Source of the DNA: Corallochytrium limacisporum Hawaii
Taxonomy: Eukaryota; Protista; Pluriformea
DNA: 64,000 nucleotides
Assembly (NCBI GenBank): GCA_002811645.1
Contig: PDIP01000087.1
Span: 62,001 to 126,000, forward strand
Direction: 5' to 3'
The translations under genes and the position numbers were made by a program. The first letter of the stretch is position 1; each line of letters opens with the position of its first letter. Shown in pieces: positions 831 through 45,877 of the stretch. Below the pieces are notes generated by a model that was not told the DNA's origin, ran no database searches, and was given only the letters and a program-made list of their open reading frames with translations.

Positions 831-3800
831 TCAGTCAGTGTCCGAATCAGTGTCGTCAGTGAACATCAGAGACAGATTCCGGCGGCTATACTCCGGCTGT
901 GACGATTCATGGTCCTCGTCATCGTCCATCGCGAAGCTCTCCTGTGTGCTCGGCTGTGAATGAGCCTGCTGCAGTGGACTGGAGGTTGGCATGGCGCCGG
1001 GCTGACGGTAGCCGCCAAAAAATTCCTGTGCAAACGGCGACGGGTGCGTCGCAGGTGATCCCTCGAAATGTAGATCGTTTCCTCCGGTGCTGTGCTGCAC
1101 CTCTTCATCCTGGGACGAAGACGCCGCGTCGAAATCATCAAAGAGTTCGCGCCGTGGGGTACGGCCGTTCTTCGCTGTTGTGCCGCCGGCTGCAGTGACC
1201 TTCGTCGCTATAGACGACCGCGCTGCGGTGTGGTCCTCGAGCAGTGCCTCACCAACCCCGGTTGTCGCAGCGCGGCCGGATCGTGGGTGCACCCAAAGTT
1301 TTGAGTCCGACATTGATCCGCGGTTGGCCATGACTGCCGCTGTGCTTGATGTGCCGTCGCGGATAGCTTTCCAGGGGGTTGACATGGTTGGGCATGGTGA
1401 AGCAGGTGGATTGTGCCCCGAGTGTTGGAGTTGCTGTCCCTGTGGTTGGGTGAGGTAGCGACGTGGTGCGGGAGAATTCCGAGACGGCACGGATACCGTC
1501 GACGGACGGCGCGGCAGTGATGCAACGGATGAGGACGATGTTGAGGGCGATGACCCAGGGATCGCCATGGGAATGGTTGGTATACCCTTGCCGATCGAAT
1601 TCGGCACCATTGATGCGGAAGCTGAGCCACCTGACATGGTCACCCTTTGTTGCTGCCTAAGCAAACTGTTCGCGTCCGGAGATGGTGTGACACTGAAATC
1701 CAAGGGTCCTTTAAGCCCGAAAGGTTCTGATGGTTCACGCCAGAGGACATCACCATTGGACGACGGCGTCTGACTGTTCTGCTGCTGTAGTTGACCGCCT
1801 GTGCGATCTCCATGCCCCTGGCTCTGACCGTAGAGCAAAGCACTGTCCGTGGTGCGGAAGTTGTGGTTTAATCCTGGAGACAAACTCGGTGGTGGTTGCT
1901 GACGCGTTGATGAGGAGCCTTGGACGCTGCTGCCGCCAACGCTTCCGCTTGCAAAAGACCCGAGTGGGCTGGGACTGTTATGCGCTCCAACACTATCTCG
2001 CCGCGCTGGCTTATTTGCCTCAGACAGTGGTTCCATGACTGAATTCAACTGTGAGAGGTAGTGTCCGTGAATGGCAGGAGAATCGCCTACTGTTGAGCCA
2101 GGCGAGCGGCCCTGCGCCATCGTCCATGGCCGTCCATGGCCACCGATGCGGGCTCTGCTGCTGTCAAAGGCTTCACTGTCACCGAATAGTCCAGCAAAGT
2201 AGGCCGCTACTGTGGCGGCCAGCGCGGCCATTGCGGCCCAAACGGCGGCCAGTGCGGCCGTCCACGCGGCAGGATCAACGAGTGATCGTCCAAAGCGTCG
2301 AAGTGCTCGTGGACTGACCCAACGTCCAACTGAATATCTCCATTCTTCCTGCTTCAACATTGCCGTCAGCTCCCCCACGCAGCAGTCGATAGTCGGACGT
2401 TGGAGCTGGTGTGGACTGAGACAGGTCCGGATCAGTGCCTCCAATGCTGGTGGCATAATCCGTTCGGTTTGGTGGCCGCTGGTCATGTGGTTGCCAACGG
2501 GGGAACAGAACCAGGCGTCCGGAATGACACCACTACGCAATTCGTGCCATTCCGCACCTCGTCCGGGTACGCGCTGGCCGCGCGCAATTTCCAAGAGGGT
2601 CATGCCAAGCGCAAATACATCGCTCCATGGTCCCACTGTCGTAGTGGCCCCCTGTGTGTGACCATTCAAACCAGTCCCGTCACTGTCAGCATCACCTTCG
2701 TGGCCGTAATCTTGACCATTGCTGCTATCCAGGAACTCCTTCCCAATGTATGGCCCGTCGCCGATGCCGTCGGGTAAGTGAGGGTCGTCAATGTGGAGAG
2801 CAACTCCGAAATCGCCCAACTTGGCACGATACCGCAGAGGAGACTGATGCTGACGACAATTCCACGATGACTTATTGCTATTGCTATTTCCCCGTTTGAG
2901 GTCGTGATCTTCAACGTCCGCGGGCCAAAGAGCTCTATCATTGGCCGGTTTGACACCCATCATCACCGTAGAATTGGTCCATGTGTTGGTATCGAAGAGA
3001 AAAACGTTTCCCGGCTTGACGTCGAGGTGAACATACCCTTTCCTATGCATGTGCTGGATACCAGTCGCAATATCCAGACCAAAGCGAAGCAAGTCTAGTA
3101 CATGCGGCCGTTCCCGGTACTCCTGAAGATGGCTTACCATGCTCTCCAACGATCCCGTTGCCTTCTCCATTTGAATATACAGGAAGCCGTTCTCTTCCCA
3201 TGCGCGGAAGAGGCGCAAGATATTCTCGTGACCAATAATCTTGAGCCACGTTGCGACCTCCTTTAAGGCCTCCTGCTTATGCGGCCTTGATGCAAACCGC
3301 CGCTTACTGACCTTTACAGCGTACACACCGCCGTCATCTCGAGACCGGACGTGGTAGACACAGCCAAAGGATCCCTGGCCGAGGACATCTACGGTGTCAA
3401 AGCACTGATCCAGGTAGCTCTGCGGACTGTCCGCATTATACAAGGGACTGTCCACCGCCATAAGTGAAGATGTCGTGGAATTTTGCTGCTGCTGCGGTGA
3501 CGACCAGGACAGGGACGAATGTGAAGACTGTGCCGGTGACGTTCCCGTTGTTGATGACATGTAACTAATGTGCTGGTGGCTCGTATGTTGCTGTTCCCTC
3601 CACTCGGCGTAGGTTCTGTAGATATCTGTGCTAGACCCCATGGTCTTCGGCCCTGTCCCGGGAGACAGGTATTGCATGAATGCCCGGAAAAAATGAGGCG
3701 ACGACAGTGACCTGTCGGACTGTGTGGATGCTGTGCTGTCATGTTCGTAGGACTGTCCCATTCCGACGTGGTCTGGGCTCTGATACGGACTGTGGCCGTG

Positions 3801-4634
3801 GGCCCGTTGCGATGGGTCTATCTGCTGTCGATACGGAGACTGCGATGTTCTCATTGCAGTCGTCGCCAATGATTTTGATGAAGCTGCAAGTAGTGACGAA
3901 GCCCGCATCGGTGCTGTTGGTGACAACCGCGAGTTTACTTGGGGAGATGAACAACCACCGTTCTGCTGTGTCACGATTTCTTCCTGAGCGTTTTCCATGC
4001 CAAAAACATTCGCGCGTTCTTCCAAAAACGCGTCCACCTGCGACAAGTTGATTTCCTTGGCTTTTGGACTGATATACGACGGCATTCGGCGGTTCAGACC
4101 GAGCCGAGACACTGGTGTGGAGCCTTTGGCAGGGCCTTCCGGTACCTTTCCGCCGGCCCCCGTCTTAGGTGCATCTTTGAGGGTAACCTGTCGATCAAAA
4201 CTGACGCCACCGCTCCTGCGAGAACCAGCACTGGGCAAACGTGGACCCGACTTTCCGACAGATCCATTAGTTTGTGACTGATGTGCAGCCATAGCAGCTG
4301 CCAAGGCAGGAAATCGTTTGACCGGATGGTTGTCGTTGATAAACTCAATTCCCGCGTTATTCGTGTAAGTTTTGTTGGTGCTTGCCTCTGTGTTGGTGAT
4401 GGAGGTCCTTAGCCTGCGCCTAGTAGCAACTGCACTTGGGTCCATGTTTTCATTGCTAATAGTTGACGAGCGGATTAGTGTCGGTCGTCCCGGAGGTACG
4501 CTTACATTTTCTGAAGCCTTTGATTCTGTATTCTCGTCCTTGCGTGGTTCTTTGTTTTGTAAATGGTTTGTCCGTAATGGATCCCTGCTCTGTGTGGCGG
4601 GCAGGAATGGATTGTACGGCTGCTCCCCGTCCAT
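831..4634 (-). CDS. PKMYT1: Myt1/Wee1-family Cdk1-inhibitory kinase, membrane-associated (PKMYT1-like)
   Basis: Kinase motifs LGQGSFGCVY, YAVKVS, HLDVKPGN, KLGDFG, GDGPY, SDVFALG and WHELRSG. The segment YLDQCF...RSRDDGGVYAVK is Myt1-like. A hydrophobic segment follows the kinase domain. Confidence 0.8.
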   Translation of the reverse strand: MDGEQPYNPFLPATQSRDPLRTNHLQNKEPRKDENTESKASENVSVPPGRPTLIRSSTISNENMDPSAVATRRRLRTSITNTEASTNKTYTNNAGIEFINDNHPVKRFPALAAAMAAHQSQTNGSVGKSGPRLPSAGSRRSGGVSFDRQVTLKDAPKTGAGGKVPEGPAKGSTPVSRLGLNRRMPSYISPKAKEINLSQVDAFLEERANVFGMENAQEEIVTQQNGGCSSPQVNSRLSPTAPMRASSLLAASSKSLATTAMRTSQSPYRQQIDPSQRAHGHSPYQSPDHVGMGQSYEHDSTASTQSDRSLSSPHFFRAFMQYLSPGTGPKTMGSSTDIYRTYAEWREQQHTSHQHISYMSSTTGTSPAQSSHSSLSWSSPQQQQNSTTSSLMAVDSPLYNADSPQSYLDQCFDTVDVLGQGSFGCVYHVRSRDDGGVYAVKVSKRRFASRPHKQEALKEVATWLKIIGHENILRLFRAWEENGFLYIQMEKATGSLESMVSHLQEYRERPHVLDLLRFGLDIATGIQHMHRKGYVHLDVKPGNVFLFDTNTWTNSTVMMGVKPANDRALWPADVEDHDLKRGNSNSNKSSWNCRQHQSPLRYRAKLGDFGVALHIDDPHLPDGIGDGPYIGKEFLDSSNGQDYGHEGDADSDGTGLNGHTQGATTTVGPWSDVFALGMTLLEIARGQRVPGRGAEWHELRSGVIPDAWFCSPVGNHMTSGHQTERIMPPALEALIRTCLSPHQLQRPTIDCCVGELTAMLKQEEWRYSVGRWVSPRALRRFGRSLVDPAAWTAALAAVWAAMAALAATVAAYFAGLFGDSEAFDSSRARIGGHGRPWTMAQGRSPGSTVGDSPAIHGHYLSQLNSVMEPLSEANKPARRDSVGAHNSPSPLGSFASGSVGGSSVQGSSSTRQQPPPSLSPGLNHNFRTTDSALLYGQSQGHGDRTGGQLQQQNSQTPSSNGDVLWREPSEPFGLKGPLDFSVTPSPDANSLLRQQQRVTMSGGSASASMVPNSIGKGIPTIPMAIPGSSPSTSSSSVASLPRRPSTVSVPSRNSPAPRRYLTQPQGQQLQHSGHNPPASPCPTMSTPWKAIRDGTSSTAAVMANRGSMSDSKLWVHPRSGRAATTGVGEALLEDHTAARSSIATKVTAAGGTTAKNGRTPRRELFDDFDAASSSQDEEVQHSTGGNDLHFEGSPATHPSPFAQEFFGGYRQPGAMPTSSPLQQAHSQPSTQESFAMDDDEDHESSQPEYSRRNLSLMFTDDTDSDTD

Positions 4635-5096
4635 GATTATTCGACGTGATCCGGTGTTATTGAATGCAGATATTTGTTGCTATTCCCAGTTTCCGAAACT
4701 ATTAAATAAATGCTTTCCTAGGTTCCAGTGAAGAACATATTTTTCATTTTGTCCCATTCGCGTCAGCAAATAACACCCTTGTTCCTTCGCGACCTTTACT
4801 GCTCGTGGCATACCACGTCATCACTTTTCTTTTGATCACAGCAATCCTCAGGTACCTTGCCATACTTTCTCCGATTGATGTACTCGCCCACTTACACAAA
4901 CGAATCAGTTCGGTCTGTTTATGAAGAGACGAGATGATAGATAACGACATCCCAGAACGGGGAGGCCTCTTTCAGGTCATCAGCTGTTCTTAAGGATCCC
5001 AGTACCGAAAAGAAGGGGAAAATCCACGGAGCTCGCTATCCCCCCTTCCCTTCTCTCCTCTGCTCCCCCGAGACCCGCCGGGTCCGGGCCCAAACC

Positions 5097-5108: not shown

Positions 5109-5505
5109 TTTGTTGGGGTAGTCTCGCTACCGGGTGTGCTGGGAGGAGGGGGACAGCGTTTCGAGGTGACCCCCCATCCGCCCGGGTGGGGGGAGGGAGG
5201 CTGTCTTCAATTTTGGCCCCCCATTTTTCTATCGGCGGAGTCTCTTTTCTTCCCACTTTGACGGTCTGACGCGAACTTGGGCTAAATTTTGGCGCGTGAA
5301 TAGGGGCCTATTTTAGGTGTGGATGGTGGGAGGTTTCCCGGGGTATGGAGAGCCGGTCCGGCCTGCCCGGCTACATACAAAGGGTTGATGAATGGTTTGA
5401 GATGGATCTATGGTATGTGTATTGACACGTGGATGATGGATGGATGAGTGTATGGATGGATGATGGTTACATGCCCACGCATGTAGCAGGTAACGATGGA
5501 TATGT

Positions 5506-6285
5506 CTATGATTCTGACGCGGGACACACTGATTTTTGCTTGCGCAGGATGAGCATTTTGACTGGCATGAGTTCTTCCGGCATGTGCTCCTGCCACATTT
5601 CCGAAACGACCTCAAGCTCAGCCTTGTGGAAGAGTGCGTTATACGATGACTCAGATCGGACATGAAAAGAGGATGCAAAGTCCTTGTTGGAGTCGGAGTC
5701 AAGACCTCGGTAAGGATTTTTGCCGTTACTCATGTTCTCCTTGACAAATACGATTCCCCGGCCTGGCTCAAGGTGGTCGCTTGCTTTCTTCAGGACTTCA
5801 GCAAGGTCATCGTCCAATAGATGCCCCATGACGTACTGCAGAAGCATGAAGTCGTATGTGTTGCAGCAGGGCTGACCCCACTCGTAGTCGGTGATCGAGC
5901 AGCAGTGATGCCTGAAGCAGAGTTTCTTCGCATTTGGTAATTCAGCATTGATCTTCTCGCATTTTTTGATCAATTTCTCTGATAGTTCAACAATGTGGAC
6001 GTGAGGAATGTTCAGTCGCTCAACAAGAAGATCACGCGTTACCCTACCGATGCCTGCACCGAGGTCAAGCCCGTTCTTGAAAGGACCGTGATCCTTGAGA
6101 AATTTGAAGCTGGTCTCAACATCAAGGTCTTTAGTATGTTCATATCCACCAAGCATACTCTGGTCCGTTGGATCACAGCTCTCCCAGAACCTCTGTGCCG
6201 AAGCGTACCATTGTTTTCGCTTCTTCGGCGGCAGGGTCCCTTTGGACTTGGGCTTGCGTTTGGCCGAGCCTGTGGCTCCGGGCAT
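5506..6285 (-). CDS. NTMT1: Alpha-N-terminal protein methyltransferase (NTM1/METTL11 family)
   Basis: WY..A..FW, MLGGY, DVETS..FL, LDLGAGIGRVT, QYVMGHLLDDD, VKEN and PEELMPVKM. Confidence 0.85.
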   Translation of the reverse strand: MPGATGSAKRKPKSKGTLPPKKRKQWYASAQRFWESCDPTDQSMLGGYEHTKDLDVETSFKFLKDHGPFKNGLDLGAGIGRVTRDLLVERLNIPHVHIVELSEKLIKKCEKINAELPNAKKLCFRHHCCSITDYEWGQPCCNTYDFMLLQYVMGHLLDDDLAEVLKKASDHLEPGRGIVFVKENMSNGKNPYRGLDSDSNKDFASSFHVRSESSYNALFHKAELEVVSEMWQEHMPEELMPVKMLILRKQKSVCPASES

Positions 6286-6785
6286 CTTTCCACTTTCAAC
6301 AAATCCGCTGGCACAGCCCAGAGTACTCTAGTCCACCAAGGCAGCTGAACTCTTCAGGTTCGTGAACTTCAATACCATTCCTCTTGTCCCCAAGGCCCTA
6401 GGTCTCCTGGGTTTGAACGCTCGGGGCGAAGAACCAAGGTGCGGAAACAGAGGGGGATCCCCCTCCCCAGCCTCTCCTTGGGACCCCAGGGGTCCCGCCC
6501 AATCTGTGCGAATCCCCGAAATAACGACAGTTTGCCCAATCAGGGGAACCGCAGTTGAAAATTTTGATACCGCGGGTGGGCACCCAAATCTCTGCTCCCT
6601 GGGCTGGGTGCCCAAAAGAAAGAAACAATCAGAGGCCACCTCTTGCACGGAAGGGTCCCGAGGTGAACCCCTCAGCCCTGTCCTCGCCTAAAGGGTGTCG
6701 CCCGTCGTCCTGCCCAATGGAAGCAGCAGCCCGGGGGTGGGACTCATCTGTCTCGTGCAGTTGGTGGGTCTTTCTGCACCAGCGG

Positions 6786-23842: not shown

Positions 23843-24314
23843 GAAGGGCATCCAATTCCCACTGCCATCGGATGCGCATGAACACTGTGTGCATTCCGAA
23901 CCCAACTGCAAATAGTTAACTGTAGTATTTTTCATTGTCTGTAATCATAGTTAAAGTTATATACATACACTCCCCATACTGTTCATATCTATACGATAGG
24001 TAAATCAAACGTGTTGGTGTGAGTGTACTGGGCGGGTCTGTCCCCCCCCCTGCTTTCCCTGTGCGGTTCCGTGACTCAATTTGCTAGCTGAAGTCAACAA
24101 AGTCGAGTGCGCCGGGTCTTTTCTCCCTTGGCCAAAGTGCACATGCCAAAGAGTGAGCCGTTCGTGCGCAGGTTTACAAAGGCCAGTCTCAGTTACCTAT
24201 GACAGACAGTTAGTTCGTATAGCTCCAGAAAGCGAAAGAGCGTCCATTGTATTGGTATGAATCAAACCAAATGTAGACAGAAAGAGAGTACAGACGTAGG
24301 CAGACGCAGACAAG

Positions 24315-26645
24315 ATGTTAATAGGACGAGCGAGTACCAGGACGGGCCTGGCGCCACTGGCACACCGTGCCATGACGAATCGGCCGTTTCGGCCTACATG
24401 TACTCACTACTTTTCCACCTCACACAAAAAGAGACATGAACCCAACTTACCACTTAGCAATGACACCATATCCCACATTCGTAACATTGGCATCATGGCA
24501 CACATTGACGCAGGCAAGACGACGTTGACGGAGCGTTTGCTGTTTTACTCGGGTACAGTTGACAATGTTGGAGAAGTACACGATGGTAACACCATCACCG
24601 ATTACATGGAACAGGAACGGGAACGGGGCATTACTATTACCTCTGCTGCCGTATCCTTTCCCTGGAGAGACTCACGGATCAACTTGATCGACACTCCAGG
24701 CCATGTTGATTTTACATTCGAGGTTGAGAGAAGCCTGCGCGTCCTGGATGGTGCGGTGGCCGTCTATGATGGTGTCGCCGGTGTTGAGGCCCAGAGCCAT
24801 ACTGTTTGGAGGCAGGCCAATCGCTACAGACTGCCACGCCTGGTCTTCGTGAACAAAATGGACCGTGTCGGTGCAGATTTTGGCAAATGTGTCCGAGAGA
24901 TTCGGGAGAAATTGCAAGGTAATCCATTAGTTTGCACGTACCCACTGAATGAAGGTGATCATTTCAAGGAGATTATGGATGTAGTAAACCTGCAGAAGCT
25001 GACATATACGAATGACGGCGATGGCAAGGAGTTTGCAGTCACAAACTTTGCAACTCTAGGACGAAGCGACCCAAAGCTTGCAGAGGGGCTTTTGGTGCGC
25101 CGTGAGGAATTATGTGAGGCATTAGCAGACGCTGACTCAGCTTTTGCTGAGACTTGGCTGGATGTTGACGGCAGTCCATTGATGATCGACACCGAGGTAA
25201 TCAAAGAGTCACTACGCAAGACCACTCGTCTCGGGCGTGTGCAACCAACCTTTGCCGGCAGCGCGTACAAGAACAAAGGAGTGCAGCCCCTGCTGGATGC
25301 TGTGGTAGATTTTCTGCCACCGCCCCACTTCTCAATTGACCACAGCAGTGTTAGGGGAGGCAAGAATGCTGGAAAGCACGTTCCTGTGGCACAGCAGCCA
25401 TTGCATGCTTACGTCTTCAAGCTTATTCACAGTCCACAACGAGGCCCCTTGGCCTTCATCCGCATCTATTCGGGAACTATTAAGGCAGGTATGCAGCTGT
25501 GGAATGTGAATCATCGTTTGGAGGATCGTGTCATCAATCTGTTGGAACCGTTCGCGGATGAACTGCGCCTGATCAAGAGCAGCACTGCCGGTCATATTGT
25601 GGTCGGAGTTGGCATCAAGGGTGCCAATACGGGAGACACTCTGGTAGATGCAAATGCAGCCAAGGGAAGCGCCGTCGAGGAACTGCCCGTGGTGCGTCCG
25701 CCGCCTCCCGTTTTCATTTGCACCATCGAACCGGAACGCAGCAGCGATGTTGAAGACCTGAAAGAGGCATTGATCAAGCTTCAGCGAGAGGATCCATCTT
25801 TCCACGTCGATTTCGAGGCGTCTGGTGCTATTGAGTTGAAAGGAATGGGTGAGCTACATCTCGAGATCCTTAGGGACCGCATCGAACGCGAGTATAACAT
25901 TCAGACAGAACTGGGAAGCATTGAAGTGAGCTACAAGGAGCGACCCCTCACAAACGCAAACGTGAGCTTTGAATTAGATCGTCTCATTGGTGGCCGGCAG
26001 TGTCGGGGCGCCATCGAGCTTACTATCAAGCGGCGGGAGGTGGGTGATGAACTCGGGGCCAATGAAGAGGAAGACTCACCAAAGAAGAAAGCACTGGCGC
26101 CTGTTGTTCTCGACTTGGACACCAAACCACTGATGAAGCGAGGTCTCAGCATGAGTGAGACCGTGCGTTTGTTGAACGAAGGCTTTGAAAATGCGTGTCT
26201 CTCTGGACCAGATATGGGCTTCCCAATCGTTGATACCTCCGTACATGTCAAGGGACTGGAGCTGCACCGGGACAGCCCACCCGCAACAGTAACATATCTT
26301 GCGCGTGATGCAATCACCGAGGCCATTCGGAGAGCCGGTAGTGAGACGCTGGAGCCTGTGATGTCTCTGGAAATGAGCATGGACCCAACCTACCTCGGAG
26401 ACGTCCTCACGGATCTGACCAGCCAGCGTGAAGGCGAGGTCAAGGAGATGCAGGAAGGTACGGGACAAATGCGGCAACTCAGGGCACTAGTTCCTCTTAA
26501 GAATATGATTGGGTACTCCACGGTATTTAGAGCCCTGAGTAAGGGCCACGGATCCTACACTATGGAATTCCATTCGTACCGCCAGCTCTCACAGGCCCAA
26601 AAGGAAGCACTTCGCACCGAATACGGAGGCCTGGGTACCTTTTGA
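24315..26645 (+). CDS. GFM2: Mitochondrial elongation factor G2 / ribosome-releasing factor 2
   Basis: Mitochondrial-type presequence, then RNIGIMAHIDAGKTT, ERERGITITSA, DTPGHVDF, NKMD, GSAYKNKGVQPLLDAV and GMGELHLEI. Confidence 0.9.
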   Translation: MLIGRASTRTGLAPLAHRAMTNRPFRPTCTHYFSTSHKKRHEPNLPLSNDTISHIRNIGIMAHIDAGKTTLTERLLFYSGTVDNVGEVHDGNTITDYMEQERERGITITSAAVSFPWRDSRINLIDTPGHVDFTFEVERSLRVLDGAVAVYDGVAGVEAQSHTVWRQANRYRLPRLVFVNKMDRVGADFGKCVREIREKLQGNPLVCTYPLNEGDHFKEIMDVVNLQKLTYTNDGDGKEFAVTNFATLGRSDPKLAEGLLVRREELCEALADADSAFAETWLDVDGSPLMIDTEVIKESLRKTTRLGRVQPTFAGSAYKNKGVQPLLDAVVDFLPPPHFSIDHSSVRGGKNAGKHVPVAQQPLHAYVFKLIHSPQRGPLAFIRIYSGTIKAGMQLWNVNHRLEDRVINLLEPFADELRLIKSSTAGHIVVGVGIKGANTGDTLVDANAAKGSAVEELPVVRPPPPVFICTIEPERSSDVEDLKEALIKLQREDPSFHVDFEASGAIELKGMGELHLEILRDRIEREYNIQTELGSIEVSYKERPLTNANVSFELDRLIGGRQCRGAIELTIKRREVGDELGANEEEDSPKKKALAPVVLDLDTKPLMKRGLSMSETVRLLNEGFENACLSGPDMGFPIVDTSVHVKGLELHRDSPPATVTYLARDAITEAIRRAGSETLEPVMSLEMSMDPTYLGDVLTDLTSQREGEVKEMQEGTGQMRQLRALVPLKNMIGYSTVFRALSKGHGSYTMEFHSYRQLSQAQKEALRTEYGGLGTF

Positions 26646-27541: not shown

Positions 27542-28630
27542 GTTTCTCTATGTATGTTCTGGTGTGTCCGTGCATCGATTCATTCTGGGACTTTCATTTT
27601 GGACGATGTGTCCAATAGGTACCCTCAACCAGCCTCACTTGTACCCTTCCCCCCGGCCCTCTCTCGGGGCTGATGAAAGAGGGGCGGGCTTGGCAGGGCT
27701 AAAGAGGCAAAACAGTTGGGGCTGAGGCCGTCTGGACTGCATCTGATGCCTTTTTGTAGTTTGCACTAGGCCTGTAACTCATATTCAAATTGCTAACCAA
27801 GCCAAAAACAATTCAAGGCGTATTTATTACGACGGGTGCCAGATGAATTAATTATGCCTTGCGTGTCGATTTCGTGTGTGTATGAACAATTTACTACAGG
27901 TGCACTGAATAATTTCAGAGCTTCAGAATGCCCTGTGAATGCTTTCAGAATATGAATGTCTCAAGGAAATCTGTTACTGTTGTGATCCATAGAATCTTGT
28001 GCCGCAAAGCACTAAGAATCGGGCGATTAAGCTCCAGAATGCTGGTGCCAATATGCCTTGTTGGTCTTCGAAAATTCAATACCAGATTTCTCCGCATCAA
28101 ACAATTCAATTCGTATTGCTGCAATCCCTAGCTATTGTATTCGTAATTGAATGATATTAGGAGTGGTTGTATGTGATCTCATTCAATTCTTAAAAACAAA
28201 GTGGAGAAAGAAACAAGCAATGAGAACTGAGAAATATAGGATAATGTGTCTCTGCATTGCCAATGGGAAGAAATCGTAGTAAGCAGTTCGTCGAACGCGG
28301 GTTAATTTTTGAAGTTCAAAGAATCAAGACCCGTAGCCACGGGAAAGGATATCAATAGCAAAAGAGCTTACTGAATTTGCCTGTCTCCTCCTTCACGTCG
28401 AAAAACAAAAAAAAAAATTGAGGGATATCAAATAGATTATCGTTTCTTTGTAGTGACATCTCTAGTTCTTGCAGCCCTCGTGATGGTAACAAAGAGATTA
28501 CTAAATCCGCATACCAAGAGAAGGGTCCCTTTTTTTCCCGCGCCGGTTCCAGGTAGGAGGTCCTTCTCCGGTACTGCGCAGTCGCCCGGAGTGGCTGAAA
28601 CGGCGGGGTGGGCACGAGTGGGTGGGCAGG

Positions 28631-28639
28631 TATATAAAA
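28631..28639 (+). promoter_or_regulatory. TATA box (TATATAAAA) of the nitrile hydratase gene
   Basis: Consensus TATA about 90 nt upstream of the ATG at 28724, preceded by GC-rich boxes. Confidence 0.5.
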
Positions 28640-28723
28640 CACTGGGTGTCACAGGGAAGCACCAACATGTGCGTCTCCTCATGTCTTGACTATTGTAGCA
28701 CACAACAGTCGTCACAAAGCATA

Positions 28724-30238
28724 ATGGTAACAACCACCCGGATCGGCGTGCTAGGCCAGCACGATGTTGGTGGAAATGTTAAGAAACTTGAAGATCCGCA
28801 GGGTGAGGAAGAGGATCTAAAGGAACTTATTGAATTTGCTGCCAGTCATGAGTACTCCGACTGGGAGAAACGCATGCATGCCCTCGTTGTATGCCTTGGT
28901 TTGAAAAAGATCATGAATTGGAGTCAATTTCGCCGCACTATTGAAGGTCTTCATCCCGATGTCTACAACCGGGTCACGTATTACGAGAAATGGGCTGCAG
29001 CGGCATCCAATATTCTCACAGAGCGGGGACTGCTCACTCAAGAAGAGATCAACGAAAGTCTTGGACCACTATCCGAGGTAGCGGCGGTAGCAACAGGCGA
29101 GAAACCGCAGTTTGAAGTCGGGGATAAGGTCGTGGTCCGCAGGGAAGACTTCCGCACCCGCTGGCGTCGGCCCCATGCGCGCACCCCGGGATATATCTTT
29201 GGCTGTTCCGGCGTGATTGAGCGGTACTGCGGTGCCTTCAATGATCCCCAGGCGGAGTGGTTTGGAGTTAAGGGTGCGATGCCTTGCTACCGCGTCCGTT
29301 TTTCCATGAAAGACATTTGGACCCCACCAGGCGTGCAGACGGATACGAATGAGAACGACACTATTGATGTGGAAATCTTTCAGAATTGGCTCATCCCTGC
29401 CGCCAAAGCAGGATCCGAGAAGGCTATAGACAGCGTGCAAATGAAACCTGAGGATAGCACTGAGTTTGTGACGGAAGGGACTCATACCCACGGACACAAG
29501 GACCACGGAGACCACGTACATGAGGCCCGGGCGCAGGTGGAGACCACTGCGCTCGACCGTGAGACTGGGCACGGCAAGGCTATGGATCGTCCCTTGGCTC
29601 TGTTGGCCCAGCGCCTACTAACCCTTTGCGATCAGCATGGTATTGTCACTGCGGCAGATATTGCAGAAGCATTGGAAAATGTGAGCAATGCCGGAGAGAA
29701 GACCAACAGTCGCCTGTTAGTGGTCAGGGCCTGGACCGATCCCGAATTTAAGGCTTTGCTGTTGAGGGATCCACTGCAGGCGTGCAAGGACCTCAAGCTC
29801 GTCAAGCCGGACTTCGACCCGCACACCAGATTGACCTGTCTAGAGAGCACGAACGATGTGCACAACGTCGTCGTGTGTACTCTGTGTTCATGCTACCCGG
29901 TTTGGCTGTTGGGTATGTCTCCGTCGTGGTACAAGAGCCGGTCCTATCGAGCGCGCATTGTGCTGGAACCGCGCCGTGTGCTACGTGAACTGTTTGGAGT
30001 GACCATCCCTGCGGAAAAGAAGGTCAGGGTACACGATTCCACTGCTGAATTGCGGTACTTTGTGCTGCCACAGCGACCCGTAGGAACCGACGGTTGGACT
30101 GAGGAAGAGCTACTTAAAGTGGTCACCCGGGACAGTATGATAGGCACTGGGGTGTGCAGGGACCCAGCTACAATCTCAACTGCGGAGAACGACAAGGTAG
30201 GTGACCCTGCGTCCAAGAAGCAGAAGACTGACGGGTGA
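28724..30238 (+). CDS. Fused beta-alpha cobalt-type nitrile hydratase (eukaryotic single-chain NHase)
   Basis: Beta half: HDVGG, WEKR, YYEKW, FEVGDKV, HARTPGYIFG and DIW. His-rich linker THTHGHKDHGDHVHE. Alpha half: VVRAWTDPEFK, VCTLCSCYP, WYKSRSYR, VHDSTAELRY.VLPQRP.GT.GW and VTRDSMIG. Confidence 0.95.
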   Translation: MVTTTRIGVLGQHDVGGNVKKLEDPQGEEEDLKELIEFAASHEYSDWEKRMHALVVCLGLKKIMNWSQFRRTIEGLHPDVYNRVTYYEKWAAAASNILTERGLLTQEEINESLGPLSEVAAVATGEKPQFEVGDKVVVRREDFRTRWRRPHARTPGYIFGCSGVIERYCGAFNDPQAEWFGVKGAMPCYRVRFSMKDIWTPPGVQTDTNENDTIDVEIFQNWLIPAAKAGSEKAIDSVQMKPEDSTEFVTEGTHTHGHKDHGDHVHEARAQVETTALDRETGHGKAMDRPLALLAQRLLTLCDQHGIVTAADIAEALENVSNAGEKTNSRLLVVRAWTDPEFKALLLRDPLQACKDLKLVKPDFDPHTRLTCLESTNDVHNVVVCTLCSCYPVWLLGMSPSWYKSRSYRARIVLEPRRVLRELFGVTIPAEKKVRVHDSTAELRYFVLPQRPVGTDGWTEEELLKVVTRDSMIGTGVCRDPATISTAENDKVGDPASKKQKTDG

Positions 30239-30480: not shown

Positions 30481-31574
30481 CTATTTCTTGTCCTTCTTGG
30501 ACTTTTTCTCCTTCTTGTCCTTCTTGCTCTTCTTGGCCTTCTTCTCATCGCCGTCGTCGTCATCGTCTCGGCTGCGCTTCTTGTCCTTTTTGTCCTTCTT
30601 GGATTTCTTGCTCTTCTTTTCGCCTTCATCCGAGCCCTCATCGCCGTTCTTCATGATGACATCACCGTCGGCACTGAAAGATTTAACCTTAGCTGGTGTC
30701 TCGTACTTCTCTGCCCGAGCGACCTCTTTGCCCTGACCACTCAGACGCTTAATCTGCCGTCCTTCCAGTTCAGCCAGACGGGCTTCGACCTTGGCCTTGT
30801 TTTCAATACCAATGTCAGTATCAGTCTTCTCACCCAGGGCATCCACGCGGGCAGAAAGAGCGGTCTTGGCGGCAAGCACACGGCTGACCTTGCCCTTGTT
30901 CTTGGGTGCACTCTGACCCACCAAACTGGCGTGGTAGATAAGACCGTACTTGGGGGTCTCGTGCTTTGTCTTTAGAGCACGGAAAAGGGCCTTCTCAGCA
31001 CCCAAAATCTGGATGGTAGAGGCCGGCTGCTTGGCAAGGTTCAGCAGTGAACCCGCGTGGGCAATCAGGCGCGCGCCGACCAGTTCTCCGACCATGATGG
31101 TCAGGTTGGGTGCAATGGCATTCATACGATTACGCAGGTAGTCGTACAGCTGGGCACGGTATTCGGTGAGATCAATAACCTGGTCACAGAGATAATGAAT
31201 GTTCTCCAGATCCTCTTCAGAGATTTCAGATCCCATGGACGTTACTGCAGCCTCGATCACAGCATCTACGAGCTCTTCAGGCAGAATATCTGCCAGGTCG
31301 GTTGTGGCAGCGTTGGAGCACATGCCCATTTTCTTCACGGTGCGTGCAAACATGAGATTATCCGTCACAATCTTGCCCAGCTCAGGGAAATGCCATCCAT
31401 ACCATTCCCGTACCCGCATTGCATAGGTGTTGAGTTCCTTGTCGATGTCGTCAAGGAGACCAATAGCCTGAACAATCATAGTATCGACTTTGTCGGGGGA
31501 GAATTTGAGCTTATAGCGGCTAAGACTATGGGACAGACCGAGGGACATAGCCTTCAACTCATCATGACCAAGTC
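30481..31574 (-). CDS. NOP58: NOP58 exon 2 (box C/D snoRNP core protein)
   Basis: [45 protein letters not shown] and a KKD/E tail. The exon begins after the acceptor ...TTGTACAG. Confidence 0.95.
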
Positions 31575-32023
31575 CTGTACAATAGAAAGCGTAGTAACGA
31601 AACGAAAATCTGATGTTAGTGAATGTTCGAAGGAAGAGAGTTTTTGGTTTTTGATCTGTCGTCTGGAACGCACAGAAAAGGGACAGGAACAGAAACTGAG
31701 AGAAAAAGAATGGTGCAGGTGGCGTTAAACTCTTTCAACAGAAACTCGAATGGTCCATTGCATGTCAAGGTTTGATAATAATTGTCTCAGAGGTAGTGAC
31801 AAAGAAATATCCTCGATCCACATTACTCGAAAAGAGTTAAGGACAAATGAAGAGGAAAACTTGTTTCCATCACTGACGACACCTGACACACTATTTCCCA
31901 TCCATGTCGCTCGGAATGTTCATAGCTCACCCAGCCACTTCTTATTCTAAATCCAGTACTGTTTCCCGCCTCCTGTTTTGTGGCTGCAAATAAACAAATC
32001 AACAACTAAATCTAGATACTTAC
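31575..32023 (-). other. Spliceosomal intron of NOP58 (449 nt, phase 1)
   Basis: 5' GTAAGT, branch point CACTAAC (31615-31621), pyrimidine tract and CAG acceptor. Splicing gives in-frame ...LESLITG|[13 protein letters not shown]... Confidence 0.92.
31781..31880 (-). ncRNA. SNORD70: Intronic box C/D snoRNA, SNORD70 (HBII-234)-like, predicted guide for the 18S rRNA Am512-equivalent
   Basis: Box C-like GUGAUGG (31873-31867), box D CUGA (31790-31787) and a terminal GUC/GAC stem. The guide UUGUCACUACCU directly upstream of box D is complementary to conserved 18S AGGUAGUGACAA. Confidence 0.85.
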
Positions 32024-32405
32024 CAGTGATTAGAGATTCCAACTGCATGCGGATGCAACGGATCAGCTCCAGGCTGGCTGCATCTGCCTGGCACTTCACT
32101 TTGAACTTATCCCGAATTGCGCTTCCCAGCTTGGAATCAGCCAACGCAAGAGTGTCCTTTGAATCTGTGTTTGCCTTCAAGAATTTTTTCAGTGTCTTGT
32201 CAATCTTACCCTCCGTAAGAGCGGTGGCAGATGCCAGGGCTTCCATGGTATCCTCATATTTCTGGAAAGCCTTCAGCTTCACAACCTTAGCGGCAGAGCT
32301 GGCATCATCAAAGTATTTGTAAATGTTGTCAGCATCCTTGACCTTACCGGTGTCCGAGACCTTGAACAGGGCCAAGCCTGCAGGGGTTTCGAACAGCACA
32401 AGCAT
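32024..32405 (-). CDS. NOP58: NOP58 exon 1
   Basis: MLVLFETPAG.ALFK, KLKAFQK and L.LADSKLG..I. The exon ends at the GTAAGT donor. Confidence 0.95.
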
Positions 32406-32654
32406 TTTATTCCCGGTACTTTACACCCGAAGTACTTATACCTTGTTGCCAATGATCAGATACGAATACACGCCTTCGTGGAAATAGTTAGCTTTGTGAA
32501 GTACCTTAAATCAGTGCAACATGATTCAACCGGAACATGGTACTGTGCGCCTGTCTATAGCGGCTTGTTTGACCTGACCCGCAAATACGGAGGACGTCTT
32601 GATTGATTCCCATTCCTTAACACGCAGCCTCTACTGTAAATCCAAAGACAAGAC

Positions 32655-32708
32655 CGTGCGTGTGTGTGTTTGTGTGTGTGTGCGTGCGTGCGTGTGCGTG
32701 CGTGTGTG
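32655..32708. repeat. Compound (GT)n/(GCGT)n microsatellite in the NOP58 upstream region
   Basis: Read directly from the sequence. Confidence 0.85.
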
Positions 32709-33862
32709 GCTCATTTGACCCGCTTTCCAAGCACTCCATGGCCGGCTTAGCTGGTCGCATTCCCGGCCCGCGATATCATTGAAGCCACCGGTCCGCAATT
32801 CCACACCCCAAACCCCCCCCCCTACTGAAGTGCTCGACACTTTGCGTTTTCCTTCGAACCCATTGTGGACCGGGCCATACTCCCTCCTCCGTGTGGACTT
32901 CACCTACACCGTTCCAGTATCCTCCCGCCCCCCCTTTCCTCCACCACGTGGTGTGTATGTGTGCCTGCAGCCAGTGGACTATGGTTTAAGAACCGGCAGG
33001 TGGCCTGGAAACTACAGGTGGGTCACATTTCCCGGGATCTGAGCTTCGTTCCACACTCTACGGCGACTCGCGGAAACAACCAGGCATGGTCGATCTTCAA
33101 TCCGCTGGTGCATTCAAAGGCTACAGCTGGTGAGAGCTGTGTGGTCGTATGATGGTGGAATTCGCCTCCTGAATGGTGTTTAAACCTCTCTCCTTGCGCA
33201 TAGAGGACTGCACGAGCCGAACTCAGCACCAGCTCCCGGGCACACTTTGGAGTACAACACCAACATGTCTTCATAACAATAAAATATACGGATATTCTAA
33301 ATTTACTATATGAAATTCATAACAGTAGTGTATTTTTGTATTTTTTACTCATATAATTGTTATATATATTTAAAATGACCGTATGAATATGTTTCACAGA
33401 CACCCCTCGCAACTCTCTTCTCACAGTTCCCAGGCCGTGCCCACTGTGTCCATCCAAGAGCTACTAGACCGAGACAACATCTGAGCTGAAAGTACATACT
33501 CATATGCTCACTATAGAATCCCCGGGTCCGCTCACCCAATGGGCGTTTTCTGTGGTCGCCGACTCTGCTGGACAATGGAGACCCACTGCATATCTGCACG
33601 CACCTCCTTCGACAATTGCAAAGTTTGTTCCACTTCCAGGGTATTGAAAAATGATTGAAAATGAAACTGCTCTATGTCTACGTGGAGGCACCCGGCTGTT
33701 GAAATTGCGGGAAAGCGAAATCAAGGACTCCTCCCACAATGGTCCTGCGCTTGAAAACTTGTACTAATACTCATCTTATTGACGCGAATACACAACAACC
33801 CCGCCCAGGTTCCTCCTCGATCTCTCTGCCCGTCTCCTTCCCCCCCCTCCCTTCCCTCCCCC

Positions 33863-34108
33863 NNNNNNNNNNNNNNNNNNNNNNNNNNNNNNNNNNNNNN
33901 NNNNNNNNNNNNNNNNNNNNNNNNNNNNNNNNNNNNNNNNNNNNNNNNNNNNNNNNNNNNNNNNNNNNNNNNNNNNNNNNNNNNNNNNNNNNNNNNNNNN
34001 NNNNNNNNNNNNNNNNNNNNNNNNNNNNNNNNNNNNNNNNNNNNNNNNNNNNNNNNNNNNNNNNNNNNNNNNNNNNNNNNNNNNNNNNNNNNNNNNNNNN
34101 NNNNNNNN
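33863..34108. other. Assembly gap (N run)
   Basis: N run flanked by a C-rich tract on the left and a G-rich tract on the right. Confidence 1.
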
Positions 34109-41865: not shown

Positions 41866-43152
41866 ATGATAGAAACGACAGCTACAAATGCAGTACAGGG
41901 CTCAGTTAAAGCTATGGCCGATAGAAAAACAGAAGAAGAATGGTATCATATTGGCACCGCCCGTCTCCGAGAACTTCGAGAGCAACTGATTCGTAAGTCA
42001 GTCACGGATCGGTCTCAGCATGTGCGTGACCAGCAAGCAAGAATCGGAATATCTACCGAGCCGAACGCTTCACTAGACGATGCAAAGGCGATCAAATTGC
42101 TCGAGATAAAGGCATCTCAGATTATTCAAGGCCGACCATTTACCACTGCCTGTCTGGGGTCGGGGGGAGATCTCTCTGAGGTGCTTTTTGTTGGTACGCG
42201 AGCCGGCAAAATCCACGCCCACAGGGCATCAGAGTGTGTAGGGTTTGCCAATTCTACCGATGCCCATGACTCAGTACCTGTCCATGGCCTTTCTGTGATG
42301 TCATCTGTCGGAAACAGTAGCGGAAAGCTAGTCAGCACAGGCGCCGACGGCTATGCTAGAATATGGGCCATTAAGGCTAGCGCTGATGGGAAAACACATT
42401 GCCTTGAGCGGGTTTGGCAGAGTATTGACCATGGCACCCGGGTCAACCGCTGCTCTGTGAATCATTCGCTGCCTAGTTTGCTGGCCACAGCGTGCCATGA
42501 CCACAGCTGGCGTTTGTTCGATGTGGAACGGTCCGAAGAGGTTCTGCATCAGGAAGGGCACAGCGCTCCAGTCTACAATGTAACCTTTGCACAGAGCCAT
42601 CCGGCCCTGCTGGCCAGTGCCGGGTTTGACGGCTTCCCGAGGCTGTGGGACTTGAGGTCTGGGCATTGTGTGTGGGTATTGGGACAGCGAACGACCAACA
42701 CTGTTGACCCCCACGCACACACGGACATGGTTCTGGGCCTCTCAATCTCACCGGGATTGACCTTCGTTGCCACGGGCGGAGCGGACAACACAGCAAAACT
42801 CTGGGACGTCAGGCAGCAACGGCATTTCCAGACCATAGCACTGCACACGGGAATGGTAACCGACTGCCGCTTCGCTGACCTTGCCGGCACAGGAGAATCA
42901 CACGTTCCACAACGGGGTCGGTTCCTCGTCACAAGCAGCCATGACGGCAGCACTGCAATTGTGAGTGTGCCCGAAGTCAAGCCGATCGCACATCTGCGCA
43001 GTCCGAACGATCGCCCAGTTCTTTTCGCTGGTGATCTGAGCAGGCCCGCGGAAACACAGTCATCATCGCCCTATCCACGATTAGTCACAGTCGATCAGGA
43101 CTCAACGTACCGTTTGTGGGAAGGAAAGATGAGTTCTTACAAGTCAGAATGA
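41866..43152 (+). CDS. PRPF4: U4/U6 snRNP WD40 protein Prp4-like
   Basis: WYHIG...L, LATACHDHSWRLFD, EEVLHQEGHS, RLWDLRSG.C and ATGGADNT.KLWD.R. Confidence 0.8.
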   Translation: MIETTATNAVQGSVKAMADRKTEEEWYHIGTARLRELREQLIRKSVTDRSQHVRDQQARIGISTEPNASLDDAKAIKLLEIKASQIIQGRPFTTACLGSGGDLSEVLFVGTRAGKIHAHRASECVGFANSTDAHDSVPVHGLSVMSSVGNSSGKLVSTGADGYARIWAIKASADGKTHCLERVWQSIDHGTRVNRCSVNHSLPSLLATACHDHSWRLFDVERSEEVLHQEGHSAPVYNVTFAQSHPALLASAGFDGFPRLWDLRSGHCVWVLGQRTTNTVDPHAHTDMVLGLSISPGLTFVATGGADNTAKLWDVRQQRHFQTIALHTGMVTDCRFADLAGTGESHVPQRGRFLVTSSHDGSTAIVSVPEVKPIAHLRSPNDRPVLFAGDLSRPAETQSSSPYPRLVTVDQDSTYRLWEGKMSSYKSE

Positions 43153-45877
43153 CACGTTCATGCTAGCAAATAAATTAGAATGTGCAGAAAGTCACATGTC
43201 AATGTAGAAGGTATTGCGTGAATGAAGGCTGCTATAACACGTACGGTGGGAGAGGACGATGGCGACTGGGGAAGGAATGATCGCTACCGAACGAAAACAA
43301 GACCCTTCCCCAATCCCCGCGAGTATAAATTCCATCTCGATTTAATCCCCCTCCATTGGCATGTTCAATCCCAAAACCATTCTGCGTTAACAAGGCCACG
43401 GGCACCGCAGTCGGCGGTTCCATGTGCGCGCCAGATCCTAAAATCCCGAGAGACACGCTGAGGCGAGATGGCGAGATGTACGTACATGCATTCGCCGTCC
43501 TTTTTTCCTTTTTTCTCTTTCGGTTCTTACTAACTTTGGATTCCCTACCGAAGCGGCCTGCCTGCCAGCTGGCGATGCCGCTTGAGTTCATGTCCCATGC
43601 GTGTTTTTGTTTTTTTTCTTGCCGGTGGTGGAGTCCCCCCCCCGGGGGGGGGTTGGGAAGGGAGGGGTGGTAACCAACGAAGAGAAAGCACCGGGGGGAG
43701 GGGGAGGGTTTTGTCTGCAGGATCACACGCCCACGGTTGGGCTCGTGGACGAGACTGGTCGGTCGGGTCCCGGGTGGTAGTTTTACTGCCGAGGGAGAGA
43801 GCCAAAAGGGAAAAGAAAAAAAAGGGGGGGGGACCGCGGGGAAGGGCGACGGAGAAACCAAGCGCCGTCTTTTGAGTCGAAAGTCAAGAAAAGTACCGAA
43901 TGTTCACCATAGAAAAAAAGCAGAAGAAACGAAAGAATGCAGAACTCAAGAAAGAAAAAGGGAAATGAACGCCGGGAGCGGGCAGGAGGGGGGGGGTGGG
44001 AGTGTGTGTGTTGTGTGTGTACATTTTCTTTTTGTTTCTGTCGGGTCAAAGGGGGTCTGACCCGACGAACTCTGTCTGGCCTCGTGCCCGGATTGGATGT
44101 GCTCTGTGTGTATGGGTCGCTCACTCTCTCCCCCCCCCCCAAGTGAATTATTTCCAATTGCATATTCCCAGTACTGGCTATACTGAAATTAAGGACATCA
44201 TTCAAACTCTTTTGTTTTTTTTTCTTGGTATGTGTAGCCCCGTATTCACCTTTCGTAAAATTTCTTCAGGTTTTCTTATATTGCGATCGAAGATTGGGAG
44301 GGCAGTGAGCACGCGGTTCTGGCCCTGCCGCAGGCCCACCCGCCAACCCGGGGGAATGATAAAGAATTTAGGCACGTACATTTACTATTGAACTCCTGTG
44401 AAACAAGAGATACCTCTTGAGGCAATGGGGGACGTAGATACTGAAAAAAAATTCTCACAGGCCATGCAAGAAACCCGTGCAGGCAGTAGCTTTTTCGTGC
44501 AAGTCTCCGAAGGGAGCAGTCTTAGAAAAATTTTGCTGACGGTAAGATCCGTACTGAATGTATGGGAAAAATGAAGGTGGCTGCAACAGCAAACAGAAGC
44601 CGCGGTCTGTCTCGTGATACGCGAACCGGGCTGCTGATCGCCAGTGGTGTTCGTCATTTGCCCGGGATCCATAACTTTGGTTGCTGGGTCATGGGGCGCG
44701 GCTTGAGGTGTTCTGCCTTTGCGCCCTTTCTCTGACCAAACGGGCTTACCCGGACGTTGATGTATGCTCCGTTTGTGGATTACCGGTAGAGGTAATCTCC
44801 GGTGATTACTGCAACGAATGAGCATGCTCATAATCCGAAAACAGCAAGGGCACACGCTATGGCATGCTGCCATCTTTCCTCCTTCCGGTATAGTGATTTC
44901 TCTGCCCCCGTGCCTTCCGTGTCTTTTTGCGATAGTAACGAAGCAAGTGTTCACCGGTTTCTGTATGGTTGTTCCGCATCACCGTTCTCATACCATTTTC
45001 ACAGCCTGCGTATCGCTGACATTCTGGAGATGTCGATGATGATGCCTGGATAGGTGCATGGGATTTGCATGAAACTCACACATACTCACATCTTGGTTTG
45101 AGTGGGACACCAGTCACCAACACTGCTGCCAATTCTTCACCATTAATCTTCAATCATCGTTCAAATGGGCACACCACACAGTCCCACCAACACAAGTGTG
45201 GTTCCGTCGATGCACTTGCTGTCGCTGCCGTGCGTGTTTGCGTCTGCTCAGCTTGGGCGACACCCCGTTGCTGTCCTGTGTGTGTGTGTTCGCAGGGTTT
45301 CGGTCGCCGGGTACAAGACTGTCCAAACTCTTCCGTGTCGATAAAAAATTCTAGCGGGATTGTCCTGGTGTAATTTAGTTTTTGGGAAATGCCGTGGAGA
45401 GGGTAAGTCAACAGGAGGACACGGTGGGGGTGTTAGAGGGAGGGGGAAAAGGCGAAGAAATAATCTGGTGGGGAGCGCGATCGGTAGGGGTTTATCGTGG
45501 GTGGGTTCCTTCTGGTTTCCGGCAGGAAGTTGGTAATAATGGTCCTGCGGAGAAGTTGGACCGATTGCTCGCCTCTTATGGACAGGATGGATAGAGATGA
45601 ATGATGTCAATAACAGTCTCGTGCTTGCATGAGAAGATGGAACGTCTGCTCCGCAACAACCGTGCGCCCTTAGTGTGTAGGTATTAAGAGCATATCATGG
45701 TTCCCAATCTGGAGGGATCGCGTTGATCTCCCGTTCGATGAAGTTTATGTTCGAAAGAATTAAACGACGACATGTACTGCAACATACCCACGCATACAAA
45801 GTTATAGCCAAGGGAAGAATTAAAGCGACTGAAAGACAAACAGAACGAAACAGACCTCTACAAGAAGAATAGCAACA

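Follow-up and report, generated by a model that had tools for sequence, protein, structure and literature searches.

The intron of the NOP58 gene of Corallochytrium limacisporum carries a predicted methylation guide of the SNORD70 (HBII-234) type, a well-supported candidate that would direct the 18S modification equivalent to human Am512. The best explanation overall, which we regard as very probable, is that a retained NOP58 intron encodes a functional counterpart of SNORD70 and plant snoR17, probably in the form of a divergent orthologue. Corallochytrium snoRNAs are not mentioned in the literature searched, and the locus offers a concrete candidate guide for rRNA methylation that can be tested in a single-celled organism related to animals and amenable to transfection. 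Unless a contig is named, positions below refer to the window, i.e., the whole 64-kb stretch of DNA that was analyzed, in which NOP58 is encoded on the minus strand.

The NOP58 gene and the splicing of its intron

The gene was followed exon by exon, exon 2 being searched and both exons aligned, while the database model (P0001) served as one of several local tblastn queries. Exon 1 (32024..32405, minus strand), delimited by its open reading frame (ORF) and by sequence reading, starts at 32405, extends over 127 codons and the first nucleotide of a codon for Gly, and can be aligned over its full length with the N-terminal part of NOP58 from animals and an ichthyosporean. It ends with CTA ATC ACT G|GTAAGT at 32024/32023, after ...LESLIT-G, and is followed by a phase-1 spliceosomal intron of 449 nt (31575..32023, minus strand) with GTAAGT...ACAG ends. 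The reading frame continues with GA CTT GGT after ...TTGTACAG| at 31575/31574. Exon 2 (30481..31574, minus strand), recognized as an ORF, encodes the Nop domain, a KKE/D tail and the stop codon. Its protein matches EukProt Clim_evm31s240 (491 aa) at 100% identity, which assigns the window to C. limacisporum; the identity to NOP58 proteins from a wide range of eukaryotes amounts to 60-75%, and the Pfam domains Nop and NOP5NT are recognized. No gaps appear on the two sides of the junction when the exons are aligned with their animal counterparts. The intron contains, 41 nt before its 3' splice site, an ACTAAC (31615..31620, minus strand, within TTCACTAAC at 31623-31615) that is, by consensus only, the putative branch site.

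Splicing was examined in two sets of assembled contigs (X3 and X4) that behave as RNA, presumably poly(A) RNA. In both, position 32024 is joined to 31574, at depths of 134 and 230, respectively. Since this skip of exactly 449 nt occurs in X3 and X4, and no such joint was found in the DNA run X1, we conclude that the intron is spliced out. A GT-AG intron of this length had been proposed in the preliminary description of the locus, and its coordinates proved to be exact. Contigs that contain the intron are present in X3 and X4 at depths of only 8 and 6; they could simply represent unspliced NOP58 pre-mRNA.

Several features of the surroundings deserve mention in their own right. A single RNA contig (28704-32446, X4 record 9) spans both the gene of a single-chain nitrile hydratase (28622-30238, plus strand) and the convergent NOP58, so the 3' ends of the two genes must overlap or abut within ~240 nt. 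In the part of NOP58 that codes for the lysine-rich tail, a segment of 34 nt (30577-30610) matches other loci, is common to separate contigs and shows loose ends in all three runs; the low-complexity KKE/D repeat is also found in other nucleolar genes. A CA/CG-rich microsatellite (32651-32712) lies directly upstream of the NOP58 5' region and, farther upstream, a run of N at ~33800-34100 corresponds to an assembly gap.

Anatomy of the snoRNA and its predicted rRNA target

The candidate box C/D snoRNA (~94 nt; 31784..31877, minus strand) lies on the sense strand of NOP58, and its boxes, guide and terminal stem can be read directly. It would begin with GUC (31877-31875) and an A (31874), followed by the C box GUGAUGG (31867..31873). 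Six of the seven positions of this box fit RUGAUGA, the seventh being variable in animal SNORD70 copies too. At the other end of the RNA, the 12-nt D guide UUGUCACUACCU (31791..31802) precedes the D box CUGA (31787..31790) and a terminal GAC (31786-31784) that pairs with the initial GUC. This terminal stem can be extended to 6 positions with one C.A mismatch.

The target was sought on the organism's own rRNAs, the 18S being located at L004:180-1971 by pattern and by cmscan, and the 5.8S and 28S on contig L025. In the whole snoRNA, the best complement to these molecules is the D guide itself, with 12 Watson-Crick pairs and a perfect match to 18S 460-471. The guide nucleotide selected by the D+5 rule, five positions upstream of the D box, is paired with A464. 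All other complementarities to the 18S, 5.8S and 28S, among which a second (D') guide was sought, are at background level, and the internal D'/C' candidates are degenerate only (UCGA / UGUGGAUC). The preliminary reading of a GUC-A-GUGAUGG...CUGA-GAC arrangement with a 12-nt guide to 18S rRNA is thus upheld, all its motifs lying within 31877-31784 with A464 at D+5. Nucleotide A464 is the site of human Am512, guided by SNORD70/HBII-234, and of Arabidopsis Am468, guided by snoR17 (AtsnoR17) (PMC8583080, PMC11542601). Since the human and Arabidopsis sites are equated in these studies, the modification must be older than animals and is expected in Corallochytrium. The 2'-O-methylation of A464 by the NOP58-intron snoRNA is predicted here from sequence.

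The arrangement of these motifs is unique in the genome assembly that was searched (24.1 Mb, 286 contigs). The pattern TGATG-N50-80-CACTACCNCTGA has one match, which is the NOP58 intron, and the reversed control has none. The bare 11-nt guide core, on its own, is found 21 times compared with 19, i.e., at chance frequency.

Assignment to the SNORD70 family

At Rfam gathering thresholds, no match was obtained in the 64-kb window. In E-value mode, SNORD70 (RF00575) is the top family with 21 bits (E 2.2) compared with a gathering score of 50, and this match is carried by the guide, the D box and the 3' stem. The Rfam hit to SNORD70 that had been anticipated therefore falls below the curated cut-off, though SNORD70 is the best-scoring family. 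A covariance model (R1) was also built from 12 animal copies only, the Corallochytrium copy being left out. It returns a single match in the window, on the NOP58-intron snoRNA, with 29.7 bits and an E-value of ~2e-4, in an alignment that passes over the actual C box. The 5' end of the RNA is misplaced by R1 and by the Rfam model alike because of ~20 extra nt between the C box and the D' region.

Besides the guide, the animal family has a characteristic architecture. The GUC/GAC core of the terminal stem is the same in all 12 animal copies, and the outer pairs covary; 93% of cells are paired, and the covariation score was reached by none of 500 shuffles. The animal copies begin with GUC-N-RUGAUG and have a variable seventh position; the first 13 nt of the Corallochytrium RNA are those of one invertebrate copy, GUCAGUGAUGGAA. 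The non-guide features common to Corallochytrium and the animal copies are the GUC-N before the C box, the GAC after the D box and a seventh C-box position other than A. Within the guide, the nucleotide at the fifth position is identical in the Rfam SNORD70 consensus and in Corallochytrium, as read on its own 18S. Together, the boxes, the guide on the organism's own 18S and the R1 match bear out the SNORD70-type, Am512-equivalent identity that had been proposed.

Short motifs might also have been assembled by chance in an ordinary intron that contains no functional snoRNA, and both the score below the Rfam threshold and the degenerate internal boxes would fit such a view. We nevertheless consider this explanation extremely improbable, since it would have to account for a motif arrangement that is unique genome-wide, a significant match of an animal-only model, a guide placed exactly on a known methylated nucleotide and the presence of the family-specific GUC/GAC stem, all of this within an intron, in a genome that has very few.

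Age of the intron and probable reason for its retention

In two cnidarians, the same Gly codon of NOP58, after LIT, is interrupted by an intron in phase 1, with the junctions ...ATC ACA G|GTAAT ... CTAG|GT CTC in Porites (L008:3392-4272) and ...ATC ACA G|GTACAG ... GCAG|GT TTA in Nematostella (L063:2297-3159). No snoRNA was recognizable in these introns of 860-880 nt with Rfam or model R1. No intron is present at this site in NOP58 of Amia, Patiria, Sinanodonta, Sphaeroforma or Spizellomyces. With about 15 introns for ~1,600 possible site-and-phase positions, a chance coincidence of both site and phase would be expected in ~1% of cases. The Corallochytrium intron is therefore most simply viewed as a survivor from the holozoan ancestor, and its status as a retained ancestral intron appears well supported by this comparison.

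The surroundings of this intron are those of a streamlined genome. Corallochytrium is secondarily streamlined, with an intron density of about 0.0 per kb CDS compared with 5.5 in the ancestor of Teretosporea, and has partly lost EJC, NMD and SR factors (PMC5560861). The window is filled by ~25 long uninterrupted ORFs, and a consensus intron scan gave counts at chance level. Two other intron candidates, at 42961-43568 (plus strand) and 24197-24675 (minus strand), were rejected, their splices not being sensible and the mtEF-G-like ORF at 24315 being continuous. The gene for NOP56, which hosts multiple snoRNAs in human, is in Corallochytrium an uninterrupted ORF of 500 codons (L039:1240-2742, minus strand; G000:C231) with no intron. 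Taken together, the ~25 uninterrupted ORFs, the failure of the two candidates and the published density make it plausible that the NOP58 intron is the only evident one in the window, as had been claimed. The accompanying claim of genome-wide intron loss agrees with the same density and with the intronless NOP56, and the view of the intron as an ancestral survivor of this loss gains from the shared codon and phase in two cnidarians within an otherwise nearly intronless genome.

Other C/D guides were searched in the same genome. A genome-wide search for a U14-type guide gave one copy, with a 13-nt guide to 18S 410-422 (C414) and a U14 domain-A-like UUCGCAGUUUCCAC. Its locus (L062, G000:C230:48847-51862; minus strand, ~2199-1336) lacks ORFs and comprises two consensus introns (GTAAGT or GTAGGT ... 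CTAAC ... YAG), the second containing the U14-type RNA and the first another C/D-like RNA. This stretch looks like a non-coding snoRNA host gene. Genome patterns for guides to 18S A28, A420, A436, A541 and A619 followed by N-CUGA had no match; it is likely that these sites are served by D' guides whose boxes are degenerate. A custom snoRNA predictor was run on 200 kb of contig C110 and discarded, the output consisting only of false positives in an ankyrin-repeat ORF, in a number equal to that of the decoy hits.

Given that the SNORD70-type guide is encoded nowhere else in the genome, that the independently located U14-type RNA is likewise found in a consensus intron, that NOP56 is intronless, and given the published intron density, retention for the snoRNA is the best reading. 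The most likely reason why this intron survived a near-complete loss would be its cargo, the sole copy of the guide. The locus would thereby represent a clean case of an ancestral intron in a nearly intronless genome that is apparently kept for an RNA gene.

SNORD70-type RNAs in other NOP58 genes

NOP58 loci of other eukaryotes were obtained by exact protein look-up. In Amia, NOP58 contains SNORD70 twice at the Rfam gathering level (58 and 55 bits). The same holds for the mussel Sinanodonta (61 and 51 bits), in which more copies are found by pattern. NOP58 of the starfish Patiria has one SNORD70-type copy by pattern, in addition to SNORD16-like and SNORD11-like RNAs. Metagenome contigs were scanned for TGATG-N40-70-GTCACTACCNCTGAGAC, which yielded 11 contigs; the RNA is located within NOP58 exon-intron structures in five of them, four of which are clearly animal-like. 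Contig L036 was left out of all alignments, models and searches after the first tblastn pass because it has kb-long introns of vertebrate type and might be human. The host strand is the sense strand of a NOP58 intron in Corallochytrium, Amia, Patiria, Sinanodonta and four metagenome contigs.

Exon mapping places the animal SNORD70-type copies in introns after about aa 58, 145, 167, 181, 262 and 360. The copies of Amia are found after aa 58 and aa 145, that of the starfish after aa 145 and those of the mussel after aa 262. As at least six different NOP58 introns are occupied, the animal SNORD70-type RNA is faithful to the gene and not to the intron. This behavior in bilaterians, where NOP58 was kept and the introns changed, provides useful context for models of snoRNA mobility. 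Among the introns mapped, no animal copy occupies the Corallochytrium site (Gly codon at ~aa 130). The suggestion that the vertebrate RNA might reside in the equivalent intron is thus contradicted by the positions of the Amia copies.

No SNORD70-type RNA was detected by pattern (≤2 mismatches), model R1 or Rfam in NOP58 of Sphaeroforma, Porites and Nematostella, nor in that of the fungi Lichtheimia and Spizellomyces. It was likewise absent from NOP58 of Phytophthora and of three other eukaryotes (two ENA protist contigs and one Logan contig), all of which are intronless and therefore uninformative on snoRNA hosting. Among the animals sampled, SNORD70-type RNAs in NOP58 are thus found in bilaterians only, in a sample made up of one fish, one starfish, one mussel, two cnidarians and the animal-like metagenome contigs, with one ichthyosporean and two fungi outside animals. 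A SNORD70-type RNA is also present in an intron of a TRA2-like gene on metagenome contig L031 (5650-5718, minus strand; identical in L033, L035 and L037). The host gene shows an RRM exon at 6057-6629 and a Gly/RS exon at 5305-5637, and constitutes an instance of host switching.

Two side observations were made on these loci. In Patiria miniata NOP58 (L010), four guides at ~2967, 3744-3841, 4223-4306 and 4792-4891 are directed to the same 18S 5' domain, one being SNORD11-like, two SNORD16-like (51 and 46 bits) and one SNORD70-like. Since the host of U16 in vertebrates is RPL4, the presence of SNORD16-like RNAs in starfish NOP58 indicates that the cargo of this gene differs between phyla. Separately, a NOP58 filed under Sesamum radiatum (P0002, UNVERIFIED_CONTAM) clusters with animal sequences, and contig L034, which is invertebrate-like, matches it better than any other; the plant assembly was probably contaminated with animal material.

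Origin of the SNORD70-NOP58 pairing

The present data agree about equally well with two scenarios, a single old pairing that was lost several times and two captures that were independent of each other. In the first scenario, a SNORD70-type RNA was already hosted by NOP58 in the common ancestor of Corallochytrium and animals, hopped between introns since then, and was lost in cnidarians and ichthyosporeans. It is suggested by the same RNA type, gene and strand in Corallochytrium, a vertebrate, an echinoderm, a mollusc and the four animal-like metagenome contigs, and by the ancestral position of the Corallochytrium intron. Within animals, where at least six NOP58 introns are occupied, the RNA as a rule keeps its gene and changes its intron, and intragenic duplication into neighboring introns has been documented in chicken (PMC2653536). 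However, one gain and at least two losses are needed, compared with two gains for the alternative, and no copy is found in NOP58 of Porites, Nematostella, Sphaeroforma, Lichtheimia and Spizellomyces, within a sample that has the taxonomic composition given above. In addition, intronic snoRNA locations were found to be unstable over deep time in a study of 44 genomes (PMC3511168), host switching is documented, and a look-elsewhere effect has to be considered for a genome with many snoRNAs and few possible hosts. On balance, we see an ancestral pairing as quite possible, somewhat short of an even chance.

In the second scenario, the guide family is old, but its move into the NOP58 intron took place separately on the branch leading to Corallochytrium. 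The patchy distribution across NOP58 genes is in line with such a capture, as is the 'constrained drift' model of snoRNA mobility (PMC3511168). With few introns left, few highly expressed and ribosome-linked hosts would be available and, as there are many snoRNAs in the genome, one host coincidence is not very improbable. The same RNA type is found in the TRA2-like gene of the metagenome contigs and in a non-NOP58 context in plants; similarly, U14 resides in an ORF-less two-intron gene in Corallochytrium versus HSPA8 in chicken (PMC2653536). An independent capture requires, though, that the same snoRNA picked the same gene out of thousands twice, and neither a poly-A tail nor a target-site duplication, which would point to retroposition, is seen next to the snoRNA. 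We would put this scenario at an even chance.

The earlier claim that the snoRNA-host link predates animals is consequently not established, the RNA being restricted to bilaterians among the sampled animals and missing from five non-bilaterian NOP58 genes. We tentatively propose that the SNORD70-NOP58 pairing goes back about one billion years, to the ancestor that Corallochytrium shares with animals. If correct, this would be the oldest documented association between a snoRNA and its host gene and a counter-example to the non-survival of intronic snoRNA addresses over deep time. That it lasted while nearly all introns were lost would then imply selection for guide production, or for the sensing of C/D supply, from the NOP58 transcript. 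The locus thus offers a test case for the fidelity of a snoRNA to one host gene across the animal-protist divide, which was not found by earlier comparative work.

Proposed processing and possible regulation

The proposed pathway starts with the transcription and splicing of the NOP58 pre-mRNA, splicing being the step seen in the RNA contigs. C/D core proteins would then assemble on the boxes joined by the GUC/GAC stem, perhaps together with an external stem. By analogy with other intronic snoRNAs, the lariat would be debranched and trimmed by exonucleases down to the protein-protected RNA of ~94 nt. Finally, the 12-nt guide is predicted to pair with 18S 460-471 and to position fibrillarin for the 2'-O-methylation of A464. 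The snoRNA is separated from the 5' splice site by 146 nt and from the branch adenosine by 168 nt. In vertebrates, splicing-coupled snoRNA assembly typically takes place at a short and fixed distance. Since the Corallochytrium spacing is far from this type, debranching and exonuclease trimming represent the likely route.

The possible external stem would pair a 5' arm at 31882..31891 with a 3' arm at 31760..31769 (both minus strand) over 10 bp in the predicted fold. The sole strain difference in the intron, at 31883, converts a G.U pair of this stem into A-U, and the local folding energy of the stem is non-significant (z = -0.56). In the predicted fold of the whole intron (z = -2.0), the snoRNA occupies the tip of a long rod.

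The snoRNA could serve as a cis sensor, in addition to its guide function or in place of it, C/D assembly on the pre-mRNA altering splicing and feeding back on NOP58. Such a role would fit a host that encodes a C/D core protein, the rod-like fold with the snoRNA at its tip and the minor unspliced fraction. The human SNORD86/NOP56 mechanism, which sets the precedent, uses the NMD/EJC machinery. Cis-acting autoregulation by SNORD86 in human NOP56 is cited in PMC13736004. However, NOP56, the gene of this precedent, is intronless in Corallochytrium, where the NMD and EJC machinery has been partly lost (PMC5560861), and we consider a sensor function unlikely. The suggested coupling of NOP58 output to a C/D guide is speculation.

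Comparison with known systems

The closest known system is that of vertebrates, in which NOP58 hosts HBII-234, as stated in the preliminary description and confirmed by two studies (PMC1687206, PMC2653536). In higher vertebrates, HBII-234 (SNORD70) and HBII-95 (SNORD11) are found in NOP58 introns 3 and 9 (PMC1687206). The chicken counterpart of HBII-234, GGgCD13, has a 12-nt 3' guide, occupies introns 3 and 6 of NOP5/58 and has no listed yeast or plant homologue (PMC2653536). The Corallochytrium RNA resembles SNORD70/HBII-234 in its target nucleotide, the guide core GUCACUACC-N-CUGA, a single D guide, the GUC-N-C box start, the D box-GAC end and the location on the sense strand of a NOP58 intron. 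It differs in its length (~94 nt versus 78-84 nt, with ~20 extra nt after the C box), in its degenerate D' and C' boxes, in its score of 21 bits versus a gathering score of 50, and in its intron, which is at the aa-130 site and not after aa 58 or 145 as in Amia or elsewhere as in invertebrates.

SNORD11/SNORD11B (HBII-95) is similar in that its guide overlaps the same 18S stretch and that it is hosted by NOP58 in vertebrates, but it targets a G located three nucleotides upstream (Gm509). Two copies are present in NOP58 of Amia and one in that of the starfish, and no SNORD11-type copy was found in Corallochytrium NOP58. Plant snoR17 (AtsnoR17, At1gCDbox46.1) has the rRNA site in common with the Corallochytrium RNA and no reported NOP58 host, the likeness being one of target site. 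In yeast, the equivalent site is unmethylated, and S. cerevisiae has no guide for it (PMC8583080, PMC11542601). Yeast snR87 was rejected as a counterpart, snR87/U16 guiding A436/A484.

A parallel can also be drawn with SNORD86 in human NOP56, since in both cases a C/D snoRNA is embedded in the pre-mRNA of a C/D core protein; the two differ in that NOP56 is intronless in Corallochytrium. Finally, in intron-poor yeasts, a share of the surviving introns carry snoRNAs that depend on the splicing of their host. Although the lineage and the host genes differ, the snoRNA-bearing intron that survives in Corallochytrium NOP58 is similar to those of these yeasts.
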